A stretch of 61,885 bases of DNA, filler included, from Choristocarpus tenellus KU-1152 (lineage: Eukaryota; Protista; Phaeophyceae), in NCBI GenBank assembly GCA_964200185.2. It is 11 parts of 11 records of this genome, joined end to end, with 100 filler letters (N's around TTAATTAATTAA, not from the genome) between each part and the next. Parts side by side here need not be neighbours in the genome. Positions count along the whole stretch, not along the records: positions 50,390 to 58,051 come from CAXNAD020005792.1; 10 more parts are not named here. The stretch is one strand, 5' to 3'. Shown here in pieces: positions 4,098-61,000 of this stretch. Under the pieces are notes generated by a model, which made no database searches, had not been told where the DNA came from, and saw only the letters and a program-made list of their open reading frames with translations. Each line of letters opens with the position of its first letter. Position 1 is the stretch's first letter. The position numbers were made by a program, and so were the translations under genes.

Positions 4098-7000
4098 CCC
4101 TTCCCTCTAGCTTTGGACTTCATATTGGCCTTGGCCCTGGCTGTTGTAGGTCTCACTCCCCCTCCTCCCTTCGCTGCAGTACCCCTGCCATGCTTTGTTG
4201 TTTGCAAGACCTTGCGCTTCCCTGAAGAACCTGAACCTGAACCTGAACCTGAACCTGCAGAGCCCCTGCCTGTGCCTACGTATGACCCATAGTACGACGA
4301 GTGCCCCCCCCCTCCCTGCCAGTGCCCTCCCCCTCCTCCCCCCTCGCCATCACTTCCATGACCATCCTGTTCTTCCTCCTCATGCTCCTCCACCATTTCC
4401 CTACCCCCTTCAGTCTCTTCAACCATCCCATCCTCCTGATTCTGCCCGTCATCCTCCTCCTCCTCCTCCTCCTCTTCCTCTTCCTCTTCCTCTTCCTCTT
4501 CCTCCTCCTCCTCCTCTTCCTCTTCCTCCCTTTCCACATCACGGTCCCCTCGATCTCCGCGATTCCTATGTCCGCTTGCTATTGGGCCTCGTCCTCCCCC
4601 CTCCCCTCCCCCGCCCCCTCCCCCCGTGGAGTGCCTTGATCTTGATGAAGGCCGCCGCGAGCCTGAAGAAGAGGTTGAGGGTGCCAGGGCCTTCGCTGCA
4701 AGCTCAGCAAGCATTGCCGCCTGGGCTGTCCGCTTGGAACTCCCCCGTGTACGGGTATTGGACACAGAACTACTGTTGGGAGCTCCGGCATGAGTCACGT
4801 TCTGAAAGGTGTGTAAGGGAGCGACACAGAAAAGGAGGGGGGCGGGGGGGGGTAGAAAGGTGACAAGGGGGATATGGGGAACGGACTTGATATTCATAAA
4901 ATGAGGATTGAAGCAGAGGAGAGGCGCTGAGTGTGTGTAGGAAGTGAGGCAAAGGAAGGTGTGCAGATGGTGGGGAGGGGGATGGAAGAGACAGAGAGAG
5001 GAGGGCAGGTGGAGGAAGGGGGGCTCGGTGGGAGGGAGGAACCTTGGGTTCACCGGATTTTTGTTACTGTGAGAAGTTGAAGTCCTATGGGGTCTTCCAT
5101 CAGTGCGCAGTACTGAAGTATTTGATGAGAAGGTTACCACAAGGTTTGCACAGCCAAATGTTCAAACAAGGAAAGGGTGTCGCCATGTGCCCATTCCCGA
5201 GAAGTGGGAGAGGACCCGTTACATACTAAATGTACACAAAAACAACAAAAAAAAGAAGAGGAACTCCTTCCCCCGCCAAGAACACACCATTACAGCATAT
5301 CACCACTTGTGTCTGTCCCTTTGTAAACGTGACCAAAATTTCCCCCACAAGAACAGAGCAAAACAGGACAATGTGAAGCAGAAAAAACCACATATTTTCA
5401 CAATTCCGCTTGAGCTCCTCATTTCAGAGTCGATCCTTGAGGGAATTTCAGGACTTGACCCAAAAACCCAAGTGCTTGATCCAAAACAGATTGACATAAC
5501 ACTTGTTGAACCCCCCCCCGCCCCCCATCCCCCATCCCCCATCCCCCATCCCCCAAACACACACAATTCCCGTCCCAACTCACCTCAGGGTCAATAGTGT
5601 TCATGTGAACCTCAATATCCATGAGATCCATCGTTCCGTCCTCGCTGTCAATACCCCCGCCACGTATACCCCCCACATTAACCCCCACTGCAGCAGCTTT
5701 CTGCAGCTTCTGAAAGTACTTCTGCGCATGAGTACGAGTCTGAACCACAGTTCGGGTACGAACCATGCTCGCCACCCGCTTCCACTCCTTCCCAAACTTT
5801 TTCAAGGCCTGTTGGCACAAGCAGACAAGGAGAGGAGGGGTGACCCGCAAGCAAGGGCAATGGACCAGGGGAGGCGTAGAGAGTCACCATACATCTATAT
5901 ACCGGCAAGGTACCGAACACGCCTCACAGTGGGTGGACACAAGACCTTTTTGTCTTACCAAAAAAATATATATAAATAAGGCATTCATAGTCCCTCCAGC
6001 CGACAGGACATCCACAACCTAGGAAGTACTCAGTACATGGTAATATATATTTTTTAATTTGCACGTATAATAGTAGAAAAGGTACGTGACACAAAAAGGT
6101 ACTGACAGTACTGAGCAATTGTCCCCTTTGCGATCAAAGGGTTAGGGGGTGGCTAAGGGCGGAAGTGTTGTGTCCCTTGGGGTTCAAATTTCACACATCT
6201 CACACACCTCAACATGTTCTCAGAAGTATGATCAATATTTCATTCAAGGGACGAGTTGCTGTTCACATTTACAGCATACCTCGTCACAAACACATGTGGG
6301 AAAAATGATGCCTTTCCACATCCTCTGCAAAACACACACACACACACACACACATAAACACACAAATCAGCAATATCGCACAACTAGAAACCACACAGCA
6401 AGGGAACACATGTGGTCTCTACTTCTAAACTGCACTCCTCCCCCCCCCGCCCTCCTCATGAACCGCATTCTTGGGGATACAAACCGAGAAGCCTGGTGCT
6501 ATCAATTCAAAGGTTTGATGAGCATATATTAATTCGACTAAAAAAGGTTGCAATGTGATCATTAAGAATCAAGTTTTGCGTGTGGTGTATGAAGCAAGCC
6601 GCCCAAAGAGCTACAGCAGAACCTCCAGCCTAGCAGACAAGAGCTTATACGCATTTGCTTGCACATACCCCATCGAATCTAACTCCTCCACTCTTTTTTT
6701 AATGTCTCTTGTCCAAGATACAATCGAACCGCATCAATTCTATTACTTAATAGTTTGCAACACTGGAAACGTATAGCTTAATGGGTGTGACATATGCGTA
6801 TGAATCCTAAGGCAAAGGTGGTGACCCCTGGAATCTGTGAGACATCCCTGATAAGTGAAGTCAAAGCATACAGACAATGCGTTGCAGTAATCGTACAACA
6901 GAGGTTGCCTGGACACATAAGTCCAAGGCATCACATGCTGTGCAAAGCTTTTTCTTTAGCTGGGCACGGATCCACTGCTTGGGGTCCACATGAATACAAA

Positions 7001-50289: not shown

Positions 50290-50927
50290 NNNNNNNNNNN
50301 NNNNNNNNNNNNNNNNNNNNNNNNNNNNNNNNNTTAATTAATTAANNNNNNNNNNNNNNNNNNNNNNNNNNNNNNNNNNNNNNNNNNNNGAGAGGCTGTT
50401 CTTTGAAGTACTTACTATGTACGCATCATGCCACACAACACACGTTCCAAGTGCAAATATCTTAGTAATTCCTACTTCATGCGACATCCATATTTTCTTA
50501 ATGGGGCAATGTAGACAGTAAGCTGTCTATCCACAAATAAATGCACTCACAAAGAGTAAACCACTGTATTGTATACTCTGTTTAAGTAGCATCTGAGTAA
50601 AAGTGCAGTGCATTTGGCACCCTCTCAGTAAAGGGAGTGAAGAGAGATCAATTTTTAAATATATATATATATATCTGGGTTGGAAAAAAGCGCGAATGAA
50701 TCATCACCACTATCAAAAATATGCGGAAGACCAGTCGTACTTCCAAACTAAGGTATACGATATTAGAGGGGCATGTTGTTGAGTAATTGGGCCCCAGAGA
50801 CTGCCATCAAATGCATTTGCTCCTAGAATCTAAAGAGCAGTATTTCGCTGCTTCTTTTATGAACAAGCCACTGTCCTATATTCTACTACAGTCAGATCTT
50901 CCTAAGAGGAGTTGGCTGCATTCACAC

Positions 50928-51037
50928 AACAGCCGATTTCAAAAATTGAGGATGGGCTTGACCCAAAATTGACTGGGATAAAGTGTCGATATTAATTTTT
51001 TTTAAAGCTCCATCCTCAATTTTTGAAATCGGCTGTT
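50928..51037. mobile_element. MITE family D (AACAG termini, 4-bp TSD)
   Basis: Same 28-bp TIR as 22763-22860, flanked by ACAC/ACAC. Confidence 0.88.
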
Positions 51038-51805
51038 ACACGTGGGAATGGAATATCAGTTAAGTGCTCAAAAAGGTCAAAATAGATCCCCCTCTAAGAT
51101 AGGATGGCTCACCCTTGATCAGTGAGCGCTCAAGAAGGTTATTCCCACCTTGGCTGCTGGTACCAGCACATAATGCCCAGGATGATCAGACACACACCGC
51201 GTCTTATATCATACTCGTCTTAGTTATTCATAAATTTTGTGTGTTTGGTGCTATGTTCTTCATTTGTTACTCTGAAACAAGAAGCAAAACAGATTCCCAT
51301 GACACCAGCAAAAATCTCTCTCCACAGGATTTCCCTTCATTTCCACGAATGGCAGAAAAACCAACCTGTGCACTGCAAGAACTTACATGTAAGGACCTAT
51401 ATGTACTAGACGTCAGCAGAAGATTTTTTTTCCAGATCTTCAGCAATAGCAAAGTCCACACTGACAACGATTCTTCGTTGCCAATCTCCTAGTGTAGCAC
51501 AAAAGCACACTAGTATCAACTACACCCATCCCATGTAGTGTGGGGGTCACACACACTACACCCACAACCATATACATTGTCTTCTCACACCTCTCCACCC
51601 AGATACAGCACAGCAGCCTTCCTGATATCCTCCAACCCCCCCCAGCAATACAGACTGACAACCCTCTCTGAAAATTTGCTAGTGAAGCATCCACTCTATG
51701 CACAGGTAGGTGTCTGGTTGCACCACCAAAACATCCGGTCCAATTGCCTTGGCAATAACAACTTCTGATCTACTCAGCCCTGGACCATAATCAAGTCAAG
51801 GCATG

Positions 51806-54800
51806 TTACAGGTGGTGATCTTTGTATGCCTTCAGCATGGTCGATCGCACTCCTTCTGCAAATTCCATCACCACCTCCCCAGGTGGGTTGGAGGTGAAAG
51901 GCACACGAACAGGTTTGCAACAGATAATCACTGTAGACACTCCACCCTTGATTTTACGTCCTACAGCATGCCCTGCCACAAGCGATGTTAACTTGCTCAA
52001 TCCCTCTTTTGCTGGTTCTTCCTTTGCCAGGATTGTCACACAGGGTGTCACATCAGCTCCATGTTGCATGGCCAACACAACACTGTTAGCCAAGGAGGCA
52101 GCAGAAGGCACCTTACACAGATAGTCCATTGCATCTACTGCAGGAAGGGTGGACGCTGGTGTCAACAATTTCTCCTTCCCCACCTCAGGCAATTTCACCT
52201 CCAAGCTGGCACTGTCACCCCGCTCAAGTGCAGCCGCTGCCCCCATCTTCTGGGAGGGCACACCCAGTAGGGAGAGGAAGCCTCTCAGCATGGGGGAGAA
52301 TATCGGCAGTGGAAAGGGCTTCAAGAAGGTTGGGCGAACAGGGTGACCAAAGGTAGCAGGTGCTGCCTGTAGTGGTGTGTACATGGCAAGAGGGAATTGT
52401 TAAATGGGAATGTGATGGAAGGAAAACATATTATATTGGGGATAGTTTGGGCGTAGCGGTCACCATCAAGGTCAAATTTTGGTGGGTGAAGCCATTTGTG
52501 TGAACAGGAATCAACATTATTACTAGGATTGCAACACCCTGCCAATAGTAGCACCACAAATGTAGGGAGTGTCTGGAAACCAGTGAATTTCTTGTCGCTT
52601 CCAGCAAATTGAGTATCTCCCACTTTAGTGCCAACAACAAAATTCAACATTTAATGCCAAAAACTCACCGAAGCCAGCAGGAGCTGTGATATCGGTCCAT
52701 GATCAACCCCTAGGAACAGATGAGGCTTTGTAGGGTCAGGTTTTCCCTCTACGACAATGTGAAGGCCAAACTCCTTGAGAAGGGCTGAGCGAAGAAGAGA
52801 GTACCTTCCAGCAGGGGGGAAACGCACAAGGGCTACCAAGCACAATAGTATTGGGTAAAGCCAGAACAAAAAAAAGGAATGAGTAAAAGGGCATGGGAGA
52901 GCACAGAGTATGGACAGAAAGAGTGAGAAAGAAACCATGGTAGAACTCTTCAAGGTATACCAGGGTTGTGCATTGCGTAAGGAACAAATTTGAAGAACAG
53001 AAGAAAATGTTCAGTATGGAGGACAATCCAACAAGCTCCCCTCTCAGAAATGAATAGGTTTATAAGGTCTACATGATGCATTTTGGTAGAGGTCCTTTAT
53101 GGACACAGGGCAGAGACCACACACACCATTGTCAGTCAGATGTGTAATGACACCAACGAGCCCAATAATGATGACTGACAGCACAACTGGGAGCTTCCAG
53201 AGGCAGATAAAGACTGTGACAGGAATAAGGACCTCAGTAAGAAGTGCTGCCGTGACAAACACCTTGACCTGACGTGTCTCAGCAGGAGTCTTGGGCACCT
53301 TTAGAAGCAGTGGGGAAGACAGAGGAGTGGTCAGTTTAGGGGTAAAGTATTTTCGATTTTCTAGCTGGGAGTAGAAAGCTTTCAGAATCCAAGGTTTCAA
53401 GGTGTTTGAGGTATTTTCACATGGTGCAGAGATCCCTTACGGATTGGCAATGCAGTTTTATTTCTTCAAACCATGCTTATGTCCCTTAGCTGAACAGTAA
53501 CAGAACACGCAAGAGAAGACTCCCAACTGCAAATCAAATTCAAGAAAAAGCCACAAACAGCCACAGACTTTGTGGTTTGAAAGATTAAAAATTTGTTGCA
53601 TGAAAGATTATGGCGCCAATTTCAAACCTACTGCGCATCACATATCCATGTGTAGGCAAGATGGCAAGGTGATGGTATACAAAAGTGCTATCCAAGGTTT
53701 ATACATAGCCATCAGCTCATGTAGGCATGAGATGGGAAGATGCCTTATTCCAAAATGACTCAAGTCGACTTTAATGCAGCAGAGCATAGGCAGCTGGCAT
53801 CAAATTCAAATTAGATCCTTATCTGGCACTTTGTACCGTGTTTGTTTGTCATCCACTTATAGACATGTATGAATGTATGGATATGAGTTTCTTTTACACT
53901 GGAGGATCTACTCCTGAACCTCATTAAGCTTTGCGTCCATTATTCAAACATGTGTACACCCCAATTCAGAACAAGAGCCCCAGGAAAAGACATGATCTGT
54001 ACCATCTATAATTGCAGGAGCACAAGAGTGCATTTTAACAGCAGAGCAACGTTTGAAGCGTACCGTGCTGGTGAATAGGTCTGGATTGAATTTCCCAGTG
54101 CTCAGGGATGTCTTAACAGAACATTGAGTAACCAGTTTGGTGCGCACAGTCTCCACTGCCTCCATGGTCAGGTGAGCTTTTGGAGGTCCTGTCGCCTCCT
54201 CAAGAGCGGCTAGTTCCCCACAGTTGATGGCCATGGCCCTAGAGGCACACAAAGAAGGGTAGTAAGAAATAAAATAGAACAATCGCATTGGTAATGAAAT
54301 TTATAACATAAACGAATAGCACCTAGTAACCCAAAAATTAGCATTCCCCACAGTTAATGGTAAGGCCCTAACAAGCACACAAAAGGAGGGTGAAAAAAAA
54401 ACAGTTAAGCATTTTCAGAAATAGAAGAAGGGAACAGCTAATAACATGCATGTACAGCATATAGGGATCTGAACAGAGCATGAGCAAAACCAAAACATTG
54501 TATTTGAGAGCATACTATACAAATGTCCTCACAAATTCTGGTACTATGACGATGCGCCTGAAGGTTGTCATAGCCCCATGCTTACACTGTATCTATGAGC
54601 ACTCACTGGAGACCAAACGACCTGTTGCAGTCTCCACCCCCTTCTGCCATCTCACCTATCAGGTACATGCCCCCCTGACTTGATAACGGGTGCCAGGTCC
54701 CTGATACAGATACCGTCTTCAGCCAGCAGTTCTTCCGGTATCTTTCCCTTGAGCTGCATGGAACAGCACATTTTGAAATAGAAGAAAAGGAAACATTTTC

Positions 54801-57800
54801 TGTAATGGTGTGGACAGGTACACTAGGAAGCAGTAACCAAGACTGAATGGACAATGCATAGCTGGAAGCTACTGCATATCGCTTCATTTTGTATATAGCA
54901 GTGGACAAAGGAAGTGGAGTGGAACAGATAGTTCAACCACCTGAAATATAGTATAGACCCTTGCCTGAATGCATTCCAGGCTCTGGTTCAATTTGCCCAA
55001 TAATGCAAAGGACTTGATGACGAGTAAGAGGGTCTCCTTTGCATAACTGGCGTCCACAGATCATACTAGGGTTGCAGCTTTGCCTTCATTTGGTCTATGT
55101 CCAATGGTTACACTCAATGCACACTGCATGCATGGTACAGATGATTATATCTCAGCTCTTTGTGCTATATTTTCATCTGTCATGCACAGTGATCAATATT
55201 AAATGCATTTCATCCTCACCCCAAACCTCTCCTCCAACAAGGATACAAGCTGAATCCCCTCCATGCTGTCCAGGCCAAGATCCACAAGAGCTACATCCTG
55301 ATGAAGGCATAATAATGGGAACACAGGATTTGGTTGGTGGGAGGAGTGGAATCAAACAAAGAGTGTGGTTTGTCGAGACAGAAAAAAAAAAATATTGTTG
55401 AGCAGCAAAAGCCAGCCAGAAAGAACAATGTTCCGCAAGGCAATTAAGGGTACACCAGTAAAAAATTATAACATTGACAATAGTTTCTACCCCACTCGCT
55501 GCTGCCATTACACACCTCAACAAGACACAAGACACAAGACACAAGACACAAGACACAAGACACAAGACACATGCCCACCCACCCCTTGCTGCTCATATCA
55601 AAATATGAACAGACACCTGAACTAAGGTGTGCTAAATGCTCTTTTCCAAAGTGGCGAAATTGGAAAGTAATCAAAGTAATGTTCAATTTGAGAACAATAT
55701 CCACGGCGAGAACAAATCATTCAGAAAAATCTTACAAGATTTCTACGCCAGAGGCAGAAGAAGGAGAGTGCACACTATTCTCCTCTATTTGTCATAACAT
55801 CAGAATAATTTGACCAGAATATGAGTGAGCACTGGCACAATTCAAAAGTATCATTCCAATATAAAACGGTGAAGTCATTGTACAACCTGCCGGGGTTTTT
55901 TAATGGACCTGTCATGTTCGGTGGCATAATCTTCATCCCCCATCGTCCACAAAAAAAAACAAGTTTTCTGGTTTGACTGTCGTAAGTATTTATTTGTGTG
56001 CTAAGGAATGGAACACGATGTGTACCCCCCACCTTGCCTGAAACCATAGGGGGTGTACCACGCATGAATGTTTCGAAATGGTGGAACATTATAAGAAGAT
56101 CAAAGACATTGAAAAAAGGAGACCATCCATCCAACCAAGACTTGTCTCTTGTCTGCACAAAAAGCATGGTGGACTCATTTTCAAAAAAAAAAAAATCAAC
56201 TCAATAAACACCAGGAGAACCACCCAATACCACAATGCTTGGAATATAAAACCCTTGAAACTACTTTTAATGAATAAATGTGAACTAGGAGTCATGGAAG
56301 GAGAAGAAGGGGTTCTACAGTACCAAGCAGTGAGAGACAGACACCCACCGAAGGAATGTTCGATGGGTTGACCTTGGTAATCTTGGATACCTCCTCTTGC
56401 ATACCCAACACAACCTCCTCGATGGTCATGGTGGTGGCATCATCTGGACTATCCCTCACCACAGCATTCCCCTCTGGTCGTTGCCCCTCACCATTGACAT
56501 CGTTTTGTCCAGCCGACCAGCACTGGAAAACAGTTGGAACCATTTTAGGGGGGAAAGCCAAGCTGAGTTGGATTACACTCCATATATAGTTAGGAGTGGA
56601 AGGATATATGGAGGAAGAGGAAGCCCACACCAACAATATATATATATACATACATGTTATTGTGTTTAACTTGGAGTACAATGGTGGGACTTTCCATGTG
56701 AGCCACTGCGTTCTAAAGAGCCTGCCATATGTGCGTGGAAGTGCCGATGTTGTCAGCACCAAGATGATGGTCTCTATATACACAGACAAGCAGCATATCA
56801 ACCTGTCCCACCCCTGTCAGACTCCATTCATTCACAATAGAAAAAAGGTTGCACAAAAATGCTCATTTCTATTTTCCAGCACGAAGGAGAGCACTTGGTA
56901 CTTTATATTCAATATTTATATTCAATCTTTACATTCAATCTTCTCCTCCTCCTACACATGCACCTACTGCTTGAGAAAAAGCACCCTTAATTTGTGACAA
57001 ACTAACAAGGACAGCACAAAAACGACATTACACAGAGTTTGGGAATCCAATTGCCCGAACCTCGACAAAAGCAACTCTCCTTGCCCCCCCTAGGACGACA
57101 GCAGGATAGCGCACTTGGCTACAACAGACCAAGACATTGATTGGGGATGGGAAGTCTCACCCTCTCGTAATCAGCAGTGGCAAGTGAGGCAGCAGCCGAC
57201 CTATCCTCGCGCCATAGATACAAGGTATCTGAGAGAGTGTCTTCCAGGTGACCACGCTTGCACCACGCCCTGGCTATCTTCCCCGATGTGGTCTTGGGCA
57301 CAGTCCTTGCATTCAACATCAAACGATCAAGGATTGACTAGATATGAGTGAGGAAATAAGGGCCTGGGACACCGGACTTCACGAACTCTTCATTGGATTG
57401 AACTATCATGTCAGAAGTCTTAGGGTCAACACGATGAAGTGATTCACATCTCAATAATAGCACTCCTAACAAAGGAAAAACCTCTCTTGAGGAGTGTTGC
57501 ATATTCAACTGCGTCCAAGGACACTTGTCTTTGACTATACTTTGGCCTTTTGCTACATTCAAGATCTTGGATTGTTGGGAAAACATGAAGCTGACTGTTG
57601 GGGTACACAAGGCATACTACTGCAGCAGTAAGTCAGGACTCCATGTGCAGGGCATGGACAAAGGGATCAGAAGAGCGGAATTGCAGCGAATTGGACAATA
57701 GAGACCAATCAGAAAGGGACAACCAAGGACTGCATAAGCACAGGAACAGCTCAACACCTACTCTGAACCAATCTATGTATTTTTCCTTGGGACCAAACCG

Positions 57801-58034
57801 TCACCAACAGAACCGCATTCGCTACTATCCTAACTCACAGATTCCTCACCTCGGCTTGAGCAGTCTGACAGCAGAAAGGGACACACCATGTGCCCCCGTC
57901 ACAGCCTTCCTGATCTCTGTGACTAGAGCTTCCCAATCGCCGAAAGCAGGGTCAACGACCTCCGCCACTAGGGCCAGACCTTCCCCCCCTCCTAAACTAG
58001 GGACCGAAAATGCGGCGCTGCAACCCCCACGAAG
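51806..58034 (-). CDS. Fatty acyl-AMP ligase-like / acyl carrier protein / DGAT2-like acyltransferase fusion protein (5' part lost in gap)
   Basis: Exons 58034-57850, 57305-57161, 56522-56349, 55297-55220, 54753-54656, 54238-54064, 53298-53127, 52832-52669 and 52366-51806. All introns GT-AG with matching phases (2,0,0,0,2,0,1,0). Motifs: LRGGCSAAFSV, PKTTSGKIAR, LVDLGLDSMEG, a hydrophobic hairpin, DPTKPHLFLGVDHG, LAMQHGADVTP and KPVRVPFTSNP. Confidence 0.85.
55520..55570. repeat. (GACACAA)n heptamer microsatellite, intronic
   Basis: About 7 tandem copies. Confidence 0.9.
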
Positions 58035-61000
58035 CTGAATCGCAGGGAGGGNNNNNNNNNNNNNNNNNNNNNNNNNNNNNNNNNNNNNNNNNNNNTTAAT
58101 TAATTAANNNNNNNNNNNNNNNNNNNNNNNNNNNNNNNNNNNNNNNNNNNNGCGGATACTTTTGAATATGTCCTTTCTACTATATCTGAGCCAAGGTAAA
58201 CGAGGGTGGGGGTTGGGGGGGGAGGGTGCTGCGGATTGTTCACGTCCCCTCTGACTTGCTGGTCATAAGTGGTTTTGGACTGCTCTGTGGTGGACAGGTG
58301 TGGAATGTACTTTGGCTGATTTTTCTTTTTAGTACATTGAATTTGCACTTGGTTTGCAGAAGCCAGTCATCATTAATTATCCTTTATCAACGACCTTTTT
58401 TTCGAAACGCCTTCCCTATCTTTTTTTATATAATCAGGATTCGTAGCCCCTTCAAAATCTCGGAGCAGCCAACAGACCTACCTCTCTCTTTGTGTACTTT
58501 GACTCTCTACTTGTGCTGTTTACAGACAATCTGCATCAAGTGGCATTGTGTTGGTGATATAATTTGAAAGGGTTGGTTTGTACGAATGAAATCAGCTGTA
58601 AGACTCTGTATACTGGACTATTCATAGGATTGAACTGTGTCCAATGTTTGCCCATAGCGAGGGGTGCAAGGCCCTGAGAGGCTTGGGGGCACATGGAGGA
58701 AATTCCAGCAAAGCGTGCCCCTAAGGTTTCCAAGATGGTGCCAAGATTGAGGACAGGAGGCAGGGGAGATTTCTGAGGTTTTAGTGGAGTGTTGTTTGTG
58801 TTGACTTTGTGTGGTACTGTTTTGAAAGTAGTAGTAAAATAGCAGCTCTTGATATGTAATTTAGTTTGGAGTTGATAGAAATTGATAGAAACAGCACGGA
58901 AAGTGCAAGAAAAACCATACTGTGCTGTCCTAGCCTGTCACCGTACCTAGTCATATATGGATATATTCTATATTGTATGTTGTGTGTTTTACTTTGATTG
59001 TGTAAGTAATGGGAATACCATAGCTTACCTGGTGGGAAGTAGATCCGTTCCTCCACGAACATTGTGGGATCGAATCCCCCTGATGTCCGTTTTTTTTTCA
59101 TGGAAATCTGGTTTCAATTTTTTGAAGTCCACTTGACAAGCAATACGGATCGTACATCTAAGGCATCCTATCTGTCACATACCACGAAGAATGCCGGACC
59201 AAGTAGGAAATGGCAAGGCTTCATTGAAGCAGGTCCAGTACAAGATTCGAGGACACTCTTTGTTGAAACTATGGAACCACTCCAGCTCTCAAAATGTTTG
59301 CATACCTTCTTACTGTGTTTTTTTATGAGAGTTTACTATCGCTATATTGTACAATTTATGTAGTGGTAGATTGCACTGTAGTTGAATATATATATATATA
59401 CTGTACTGTACTTTATTGTCCTTTTTTTTTGGCAGTAGTCCGTAACGTACAGTGTTTTTTTTTTTAAGACCGCTACAGCACTGTATTTTTATAAAATGGT
59501 ATACTGTACCACATTGTACTTGTACTGTGGTTTGTATTCGAAATTTTCTCTTCTTGAACCGAGGTGTGAAATCACTGCTGTGATGCACGCCTTACTTCTT
59601 TTTAACTCCCCTGGTGTATTCCGTCAAGTGCAAAGTTTTTTTTGTTTTTTTTTCAGCCCACTAAGGAGTTGTCCCATGACAAGAGCGTTCGAGCCATGAT
59701 CATCCAGCAAGGCGGATTGATAAATCTAAGTGATGATCCCAATCCTGATTGAACCCACCGTGCAGTACCTCACCTGGTCAGGGCTCTCTATTTGTGGAAA
59801 TCCCGTTGATGTGCTTTTGAAACTATATGTACTCGTAGGCATGCCCACGCAGGTAGCATCGCCATGTATGGTGCTCTAATTTATTGGAAGGCGAAGCACA
59901 GCCCTCATCAAAAATGCCTGAGCAAAAGTGTGTTTTTTAGGGGCCAGGGAGGAGCAAAAAAAGCGAGACATTGTTTGGGTTTGATTGAACCTCTTGCTCA
60001 GTTATTTTTTTAAGTGCGCAATTCTAGTGTAACTTGGAAATGCCAATGTTTCTGGCTGACTGTATTGGTAGTGGTGATCATTTTCGTGCGTTCTATTTCT
60101 ATTGTGCGTTTGTGTGCAGCACTTAAAAAAAAAAAACTATTTGGTCGTAAGGACAAGAGAAAAAAAAATAGCACTTTTTTGTACTTTTAGTTAATAATAC
60201 AGAGTGAGCATCAGTCATCCAAGACTCGTGCATCCGTCCGAGGTAGTATTTTTTTTTTGCACATTTTTTTTTTTCTGATGCGGTTTTTAAACTGTGAAAC
60301 AAACGGCTTGGCTTTCAAGGGTTAGGGTTAGGACTGTTTCGACAATGGTTCACCTCGTGAGTGCTAAGACTTGTCTGTCAGTGTCCCTTGTTGCTGGTGT
60401 CTGCCGCATTAAGTCAACAACATCAACAAAAGGTATTCAACAGGGCTTTACACCAGACTGGCCATTCATCAGGCTGGCACAGGGGGTCTGGGCCACAGAC
60501 TGGCCCATGGACTGGTCCCTGAACTTTTTTAAAGGCCCTGGCCAGGACCTGTGAAAGGATATCTTACCCGGACTGGTAGAAAGCCTGTTTATTTATGTTT
60601 GTTTGGTAACCCTAACCCTAACCCTAACTTCTTCTGTCGCACCCCCTGGCCCCTGCTGGGCTTCCCTCCCCCCCGTGCCATACCCTGAGGTATTTCTAAT
60701 CAGATGGTGAATTTTACTCAAACCCCAAGAAGGGCAACGGCTTTCTAAAACTTGCAGGTTGAGCTAACACAATTGTTTTTGTCCTGAGAGTGAATCTGAC
60801 TTTCTTTTTTTTTTCTTTTTTCTTTTTTAATTCCATGTTCTGGCTGTGCCAGGAGGTACACTGCAGATGTCCTTGTAGTGGGGGCCGGAGATGAAGGTAG
60901 TGGGGGAGAGGTGACCCTGTGGTTGCAGCATGGCCCGGTGGAGGGAGATCCTCTAGAAAGATCAAGGTATTGATAAATGATGGCAACAGAGCTGAACATA

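Follow-up and report, generated by a model that had tools for sequence, protein, structure and literature searches.

One spliced gene of the brown alga Choristocarpus tenellus encodes a fatty acyl-AMP ligase-like region, an acyl carrier domain and a DGAT2-like fold

The window analysed here is a stretch of 61,885 nucleotides joined from parts of the genome of the brown alga Choristocarpus tenellus KU-1152, and all coordinates count along it unless a related locus is named. Positions 50390-58051 are one entire contig of 7,662 bases (CAXNAD020005792.1). Its minus strand carries a gene in which nine exons, numbered here from the 5' end, join in phase into one open frame, each intron running from GT to AG. 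The predicted polypeptide joins the end of an adenylation domain, whose best, weak matches are fatty acyl-AMP ligases (FAALs), to a putative carrier domain, a linker, a probable membrane hairpin and a domain modelled with the alpha/beta acyltransferase fold of the lysophospholipid acyltransferase (LPLAT) superfamily, in a form resembling DGAT2. This architecture is genuine and transcribed, and it seems not to have been described before. With a probability of roughly 0.5, we read it as a membrane-anchored, self-contained acylation module, in which the FAAL would load its own carrier and the DGAT2-like domain would pass the acyl group to a lipid acceptor. The gene is nuclear; its 3' two-thirds lie in the window, and further 5' exons are off the contig.

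The exon structure was compared with contigs from three public runs of one study, mapped on 52051-58050. Runs X1 and X2 gave flat depth and zero joints and look like genomic DNA. Run X3 was RNA-like, with a depth of about 350-1900 in bins containing exons and mostly 0.3-40 in bins of intron only. Eight joints at which X3 contigs skip genomic sequence match the eight predicted introns to the base, allowing an ambiguity of one or two bases in the placing of the cut where this is stated. All eight read CT..AC on the plus strand, equivalent to GT..AG on the gene strand, with a depth per joint of 1146-1919. Exons 1 and 2 are joined at 57304/57849 (cut +1; depth 1559), and the joints between exons 2 and 3 (56522/57161) and exons 3 and 4 (55296/56348; cut +1) lie together on one 399-nt contig of depth 1545. 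The joint between exons 4 and 5 is at 54753/55220 (depth 1919), followed by 54237/54655 (exons 5 and 6; cut +1), 53296/54062 (exons 6 and 7; cut +2) and 52832/53127 (exons 7 and 8), while exon 8 is flanked by joints on either side (depth 1674). The nine in-phase exons and the peptides that an earlier note on this DNA had proposed were all present, and its eight junctions were exact in X3. A minor alternative joint, 54753/54965, pairs a GC donor within intron 4 with the acceptor of exon 5, at a depth of 23 versus 1919 for the main joint.

A ninth junction was indicated by a loose end in X3 at 58035, where an off-contig exon is spliced to 58034 in frame (...RTAEGEESIR/LRGGCSAAF); this reading assumes that the genomic g at 58035 equals the final base of that exon by coincidence. 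The messenger therefore extends upstream into the adenylation domain. The upstream peptide resembles the ...VERTAEAAVTG region of a relative, which follows the A8 motif (GRIKDLVIVRGRNHYPQD). One of the 5' exons that the earlier note had hoped to recover has in this way been read in part, and the remaining N-terminal exons are off the contig. Exons from the off-contig upstream exon to the stop are chained by splicing at similar depth, and the gene is expressed as one spliced frame, as read from RNA-like contigs, for which a single-molecule span goes beyond what they prove.

The only database protein from this contig is CAM9561148.1 (395 aa, "unnamed protein product [Choristocarpus tenellus]"). 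It joins exons 5-9 identically to our model, but its start is an ATG inside intron 4 (54753-54771; MCCSMQ, then exon 5), and exons 1-4 are left out. As deposited, the 395-aa model begins within an intron and conceals both the FAAL part and the carrier serine, and the public annotation should be corrected. Its extent could be taken to mean that two neighbouring genes, one for a FAAL-carrier protein and one for a small membrane acyltransferase, have been joined only through read-through transcription or in the assembling of RNA contigs; the public annotation does have exons 5-9 only as a gene, and contigs cannot prove one molecule spanning every exon. However, in-phase joints link each consecutive exon pair at depth 1146-1919, including exons 4-5, 5-6 and 6-7, no stop codon or start context lies between the parts, the annotated start being an intronic ATG, and a collinear, in-frame exon series with its intron positions is kept in related loci. 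We consider such an artefact very improbable.

Relatives were few in protein databases. A search with exon 9 among 1.84 billion representative proteins gave five matches including itself, and a profile search raised the relatives to about 22-23, all of them short open reading frame (ORF) fragments from unannotated Logan/ENA contigs; no annotated full-length member was found among the 1.84 billion. A homologue search bounded by shared words and by length, run with CAM9561148.1 and with exon 9, gave the query itself or no match. Exon translations were then compared by tblastn with eight fetched loci (L001-L008). Loci L001 and L002 contain homologues of exons 1, 2, 3, 4, 5, 6, 8 and 9 in the same order, on one strand and with matching exon ends, and L004, L007 and L008 contain partial exon sets. 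Upstream of the exon 1 homologues, exons continue collinearly through AMP-binding and FAAL models. The architecture of FAAL, carrier, linker, hairpin and DGAT2-like domain is therefore that of a conserved gene family. The family is most likely brown-algal, given a GC content of 49-60%, alanine-rich proteins and shared intron positions.

Family and fold searches were run exon by exon, with CAM9561148.1, the database's own join of exons 5-9, used for the C-terminal half. Exon 1 (57850..58034, minus strand, as are all features of the gene; acceptor AG at 58036-58035; phase 2 end) encodes part of a probable adenylation C-terminal subdomain (LRGGCSAAFSV...LLKP). Its best NCBIfam match was the FadD32-like FAAL model (E 6e-4, profile positions 531-591 of 614). 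Exon 2 (57161..57305) carries the A10 motif, (R)TVPKTTSGKIAR, followed by the adenylation domain tail, and matched a fatty acyl-AMP ligase model over its last 24 positions (E 0.0036, positions 587-610 of 612). The A10 motif reads VPKTTSGKIAR (pattern PKTxSGKxxR), with the catalytic-type lysine at codon 57280-57278. Family matches of the two exons are weak (E 6e-4 to 0.036) because the pieces are short, and a search of Protein Data Bank (PDB) sequences with exon 1 was uninformative. Exons 1 and 2 together appear to be the C-terminal subdomain of an adenylating enzyme, with FAAL/FadD32 as its weak best matches, at the profile positions expected if the earlier note's assignment of a FadD32-type FAAL terminus is correct.

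The related locus L001 gives a fuller view of this part. Its exon 1 homologue (5950-6138 of that locus) is 60% identical to exon 1 and its exon 2 homologue 50% identical to exon 2, and its upstream exons are collinear through FAAL models from about position 12 to 593, and also through Pfam AMP-binding. FAAL models lead on most of its adenylation exons. The FAAL-class domain of L001 is complete and begins at a methionine, with no signal peptide or hydrophobic leader. Most solved FAALs (FadD32, Legionella and E. coli FAAL) matched its A8 exon at 51-69 bits and FadD23 at 45 bits, whereas coenzyme A (CoA) ligases reached 33 bits or less.

The carrier domain is assigned from sequence to three exons, 3-5. 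Exon 3 (56349..56522) encodes a low-complexity linker and then a probable first carrier helix (MTIEEVVLGMQEEVSKITKVNPSNIPS), exon 4 (55220..55297; 78 nt) the carrier core DVALVDLGLDSMEGIQLVSLLEERFG, and exon 5 (54656..54753; phase 2 end) the C-terminal helices (LKGKIPEELLAEDGICIRDLAPVIKSGGHVPD). In the Pfam and NCBIfam scans exon 4 was the sole exon to pass a Pfam threshold unaided, with 25.0 bits against PF00550 (PP-binding; cut-off 20.8, E 2.3e-5, positions 22-46 of 67), and it also matched acyl carrier protein (ACP) models. The predicted phosphopantetheine-attachment serine lies in LGLDS (codon 55267-55265). It is invariant in L001, L002, L004, L007 and L008, where LGLDSME..QL..LLE.RF is conserved, and the L001 homologue of exon 4 scored 27.2 bits against PF00550. 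The flanking exons 3 and 5 have a fitting length for carrier helices and are conserved in relatives: exon 3 gave weak but collinear tblastn matches in L001, L002 and L004 (E about 4e-4 to 8e-4), and exon 5 is 41-45% identical to four relatives, with a ratio of nonsynonymous to synonymous substitution rates (dN/dS) of 0-0.07. No other part of the gene is as constrained as the carrier exons, whose dN/dS is about 0-0.1 in most pairs and never above 0.28. A carrier domain spread over three exons had been proposed in the earlier note and agrees with these results. The note had also placed the LGLDS exon outside the ORF track, which holds at the default length cut-off, where alone it is dropped; at min_aa 25 it is listed as a 41-aa ORF.

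These data bear on whether the protein could instead be an ordinary acyl-CoA synthetase (ACS) feeding an adjacent DGAT2-like domain, that is, a CoA-dependent ACS-DGAT fusion with a vestigial or regulatory carrier. DGAT2 enzymes normally take acyl-CoA, and the exons that would encode the FAAL-specific N-terminal insertion lie off this contig. Nevertheless, strong constraint on the carrier exons (dN/dS mostly 0-0.1) and an invariant attachment serine are not what a vestigial carrier would predict, and CoA ligases are a much poorer fit to the adenylation exons of the relative than FAAL models and solved FAALs are. We regard a CoA-dependent fusion as improbable.

Between the carrier and the C-terminal fold lie a linker and a hydrophobic segment. 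The conserved linker of exon 6 (54064..54238; AMAINCGELAALEEATGPPK...STGKFNPDLFTST) has about 58 residues, 46-52% identical to L001, L004, L007 and L008 (dN/dS 0.08-0.25), with homologues at 8243-8392 of L001 and 1583-1732 of L004. Neither Pfam and NCBIfam scans of exon 6 nor an Atlas search of the exon 5-6 linker gave a family, Atlas-feature or informative structure match. Exon 7 (53127..53298; phase 1 end) encodes about 45 hydrophobic residues (VKVFVTAALLTEVLIPVTVFICLW K LPVVLSVIIIGLVGVITHL), over which the Kyte-Doolittle mean in a 19-residue span is at least 1.6 at centres 117-148 of CAM9561148.1. We read this segment, as the earlier note had, as a likely membrane hairpin directly N-terminal to the C-terminal fold. 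A hydrophobic ORF stretch occupies the equivalent position in L001 (8955-9254). Separately, the 40 nt at 54344-54383 in intron 5 repeat the intron 5/exon 6 boundary (54214-54253) in degenerate form, at 78% identity. The copy lies 130 nt upstream on the gene strand and looks like a decayed duplicate of the exon 6 start (ALPLTVGNANFW versus AMAINCGELAAL).

The C-terminal domain starts in exon 8 (52669..52832; RFPPAG...EFGLHIVVEGK...HLFLGVDHGPISQLLLAS) and is completed by exon 9 (51806..52366; ...LAMQHGADVTPC...KPVRVPFTSNPPGEVVMEFAEGVR...), where coding runs from 52366 to 51809 and the stop codon is 51808-51806. Exons 6, 7, 8 and 9 gave nothing significant in the exon-by-exon Pfam and NCBIfam scans. 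The best-scoring relative, P0003, had a sub-threshold DAGAT match (16.7 bits versus a cut-off of 22) at the profile positions expected for it (232-267 of 297). Residues 150-395 of CAM9561148.1 were modelled with AF2 on 29 aligned rows, giving a pLDDT (predicted local distance difference test) of 75 and a pTM (predicted template modelling score) of 0.72; a single-sequence AF2 model of the whole protein (pLDDT 45) was discarded. The top solved structure by VIA-align was PlsC (Z 11.3, 173 residues aligned, root-mean-square deviation 4.5), and other rows were PatA (Z 8.6-9.9), LpxM (Z 8.0) and plastidial GPATs (Z 7-7.7). The top 13 rows were PlsC, PatA, LpxM and GPATs, apart from a single row for chain T of 7zkq, a complex-I assembly intermediate (Z 8.0), which we take to be tafazzin. 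Foldseek gave a probability of 0.96-0.99 for GPAT and PlsC. The nearest clusters in the ESM Atlas were DAGAT, with a template modelling (TM) score of 0.63 to the AF2 model (Atlas range 0.59-0.63); the Atlas's own model had a TM score of 0.71 and a feature score of 0.92 with DAGAT clusters, and PlsC-type families came close behind. The models thus predict an LPLAT-superfamily alpha/beta acyltransferase fold, nearest to DAGAT clusters. The DGAT2 assignment holds at fold level only, not by sequence family, and it is in this form that the DAGAT-like domain of the earlier note stands.

Motifs were compared by eye with the published DGAT2 patterns (PMC3075658). Liu et al. (2011) describe three signature motifs, of which YFP is essential in yeast DGAT2 and HPHG is EPHS in plants (PMC3075658). 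HPHG is replaced here by VDHG, with His199 (codon 52701-52699) in the place of the essential second histidine, and by VGLG, VGLA or GGLT in relatives. The HX4D motif of other acyltransferases is not formed either, as the sequence is H199-G-P-I-S-Q, with no acidic residue at +5 and an aspartate preceding the histidine; relatives have L-G-A-A-E-Q. From the third motif, RxGFx(K/R)xAxxxGxxx(L/V)VPxxxFG(E/Q), only the core AMQHGADVTP is found here, and LAPAVALAMRxGAQIVPC in relatives, so that A-x3-G-A-x-V-x-P is kept. The domain thus has an LPLAT fold with DGAT2 character, in which most of the active-site region has been rewritten, and acyl transfer by it is suggested by the fold and by one retained histidine.

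Several results weigh against an active, CoA-independent acyl transferase module. The FAAL class of this gene is indicated by weak matches and by a relative, the N-terminal adenylation exons lying outside the window, and run X3 carries no record as RNA. Pfam DAGAT (PF03982) did not match CAM9561148.1, exon 8 or exon 9 even at E<=10, and at the same threshold the family profile found no solved structure among PDB sequences and neither a DGAT2 nor any annotated protein among the scored database candidates. YFP is not found, with K-EFG-LHIV here and an unconserved (K/R)(H/Y)(L/I)(G/T)(V/L)R in relatives, and the R, GF, K and FG(E/Q) of the third motif are missing from this gene and from the family consensus alike. 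The HPHG histidine is missing in all five relatives with a readable exon 8 (L001, L004, L006, L007 and L008). Also, none of the 23 aligned relatives has a 27-residue segment that the Choristocarpus protein carries immediately ahead of AM..GA..VPC (KLPEVGKEKLLTPASTLPAVDAMDYLC...; residues about 268-296 of CAM9561148.1, window about 52192-52106). Finally, the acyltransferase activity of the nearest bacterial analogue, ElbD, was never demonstrated in vitro (PMC9131029).

Since the histidine is missing in most relatives, their domain may only bind or anchor. The protein could then be a FAAL-carrier didomain with a non-catalytic DGAT2-like remnant that binds lipid or anchors the protein to a membrane, the endoplasmic reticulum or lipid droplets, and the acyl-S-carrier would be used by a separate enzyme (an acyltransferase or a polyketide synthase) or released otherwise. 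The histidine lost from five readable relatives, the absence here too of YFP and RxGFxK, and the further 27 core residues lacking in relatives would all be expected of a remnant. There are well-established cases of FAAL-ACP didomains supplying acyl chains to other enzymes, among them HapA and NocH (PMC11837247). A dN/dS of about 0.2 in exons 8-9 fits a structural or binding role as well. On the other hand, Choristocarpus retains Asp-His at the catalytic position and a fuller core, the hairpin would put carrier and fold on one side of the membrane, and the invariance across 24 sequences of many residues along the motifs AM..GA..VPC, P.RVP and VME.AE goes beyond the apparent needs of an anchor. 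We consider a non-catalytic remnant a serious possibility, though one we would not expect to prevail.

Selection on the C-terminal exons bears on both readings. Across pairs of relatives, the Nei-Gojobori dN/dS of exons 8-9 was 0.13-0.34, and 0.19-0.26 in two close pairs. Exons 8-9 are therefore under purifying selection in relatives despite the lost histidine, and many positions, including many along the three motifs just named, are invariant across the 24 sequences. The family clearly needs its C-terminal domain, not necessarily as a canonical histidine-dependent transferase. Choristocarpus is among the most divergent of the brown-algal genomes (10.1101/2024.02.19.579948) and, with its Asp-His and fuller core, may hold an ancestral, catalytically competent form.

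In the acylation module that we favour, the FAAL would adenylate a free fatty acid to acyl-AMP and load it onto the phosphopantetheine arm of its own carrier rather than onto CoA; these two steps are proposed from family knowledge of FAAL-ACP didomains (PMC8460268, PMC11837247). The hairpin would bring the chain back to the same membrane face, letting the carrier reach the DGAT2-like domain. That domain would then acylate a membrane lipid or some other compound with a hydroxyl group, and in Choristocarpus His199 of VDHG would act as the base. Acyl transfer is the weakest step of this scheme. A CoA-independent assembly line is a plausible hypothesis. A wider proposal, which we put forward only tentatively, is that brown algae possess a CoA-independent lipid acylation machine, with a cytosol-facing FAAL and a membrane-embedded DGAT2 fold off-loading an in-cis carrier directly to neutral or membrane lipid, of which Choristocarpus would keep the ancestral form while later brown algae remodelled the active site.

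The logic of such a module is already known from bacteria. Myxococcus xanthus ElbD, of ether-lipid biosynthesis, likewise has acyl-activating (ACS/FAAL-type), ACP and glycerolipid acyltransferase-fold domains in the same order in one polypeptide, and in vitro work demonstrated the activity of both its ACS and its ACP domain (Lorenzen et al. 2014, reviewed in PMC9131029). ElbD differs in being bacterial and soluble, with an extra N-terminal FAR-like reductase, an AGPAT/PlsC-type transferase (PF01553) and no membrane hairpin between carrier and transferase. E. coli Aas resembles the proposed mechanism, as it is a membrane enzyme that activates fatty acids without CoA and channels acyl-ACP to its own LPLAT-fold domain; the acyl-ACP that it makes is usable only by that domain (PMC6167442). 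Unlike the present gene, Aas is bacterial and PlsC-type, with its acyltransferase at the N-terminus, a separate ACP protein and a known acceptor, 2-acyl-lysophospholipid. Bacterial FAAL-ACP didomains share the fusion of a FAAL to its cognate carrier (PMC11837247). Patil et al. also report bacterial FAAL-like domains fused with lysophospholipid acyltransferases, which are independent of polyketide synthases and nonribosomal peptide synthetases and are uncharacterised (PMC8460268). Those fusions are prokaryotic with a PlsC-like partner, whereas the gene described here comes from a eukaryote, is rich in introns and has a DGAT2-like partner.

Likeness to DGAT2/MGAT enzymes (PF03982) includes an N-terminal hydrophobic hairpin just before the catalytic fold, a collinear resemblance around EFGLHIVVEGK...HLFLGVDHGPIS and LAMQHGADVTP, and DAGAT as the nearest predicted-structure clusters. 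The domain in this gene, however, is below the Pfam threshold and fused behind a FAAL and an ACP, while DGAT2 enzymes are stand-alone users of acyl-CoA. The parallel with DIP2 drawn in the earlier note extends to a eukaryotic FAAL-like domain tied to neutral-lipid metabolism and diacylglycerol homeostasis (PMC9342972). It goes no further, since DIP2 combines a DMAP1-binding domain with two FAAL-like domains, lacks a carrier, hairpin or acyltransferase fold, and is no architectural relative.

A literature search found no description of a eukaryotic FAAL-carrier-DGAT2-like protein and no characterised protein with this architecture. FAALs load acyl-AMP onto holo-ACP and reject CoA. They are marked by an insertion specific to their N-terminal domain, together with a CoA pocket that is blocked (PMC8460268); the supplements of that study contain no stramenopile or brown-algal FAAL architecture entry, and the main text of the Phaeoexplorer paper has no mention of acyl-AMP, AMP-binding or acyltransferase (10.1101/2024.02.19.579948). 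The earlier note knew of no characterised enzyme of this build, which agrees with the literature, although ElbD, Aas and the bacterial FAAL-acyltransferase fusions are precedents for the principle. What is new is the eukaryotic, hairpin-linked form with a DGAT2 fold.

The acyltransferases that make glycerolipids and neutral lipids in eukaryotes are believed to use acyl-CoA, or free acyl-ACP in plastids. If the proposed mechanism is true, the gene would encode a channelled pathway of its own, taking free fatty acid to lipid without drawing on the CoA pool, parallel to Aas and ElbD with a eukaryotic DGAT2-type fold, and this would be the first such fold in a eukaryote to use a covalently tethered acyl donor. 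The family is also a natural experiment on the catalytic needs of the DGAT2 fold, with the histidine kept here and lost in relatives under continued selection.

The remaining observations concern non-coding parts of the gene and its surroundings. A probable 3' untranslated region, 51011..51805, is deduced from the length of the RNA-like contig that begins at the exon 9 acceptor (X3 record 17; 1357 nt, depth 1249), the first 317 nt of which map to 52367-52051, the remainder extending past the mapped region. About 770 nt downstream of the stop is a perfect 28-nt inverted repeat (50928-50955 and 51010-51037, with a 54-nt spacer). It lies near the expected end of the RNA-like exon 9 contig and may be an element resembling a miniature inverted-repeat transposable element or a 3'-end hairpin. 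Intron 3 contains a microsatellite, (ACAAGAC) repeated 7.4 times at 55520-55571; many short, high-depth contigs pile up at this repeat in the DNA-like runs, and it is therefore common in the genome.

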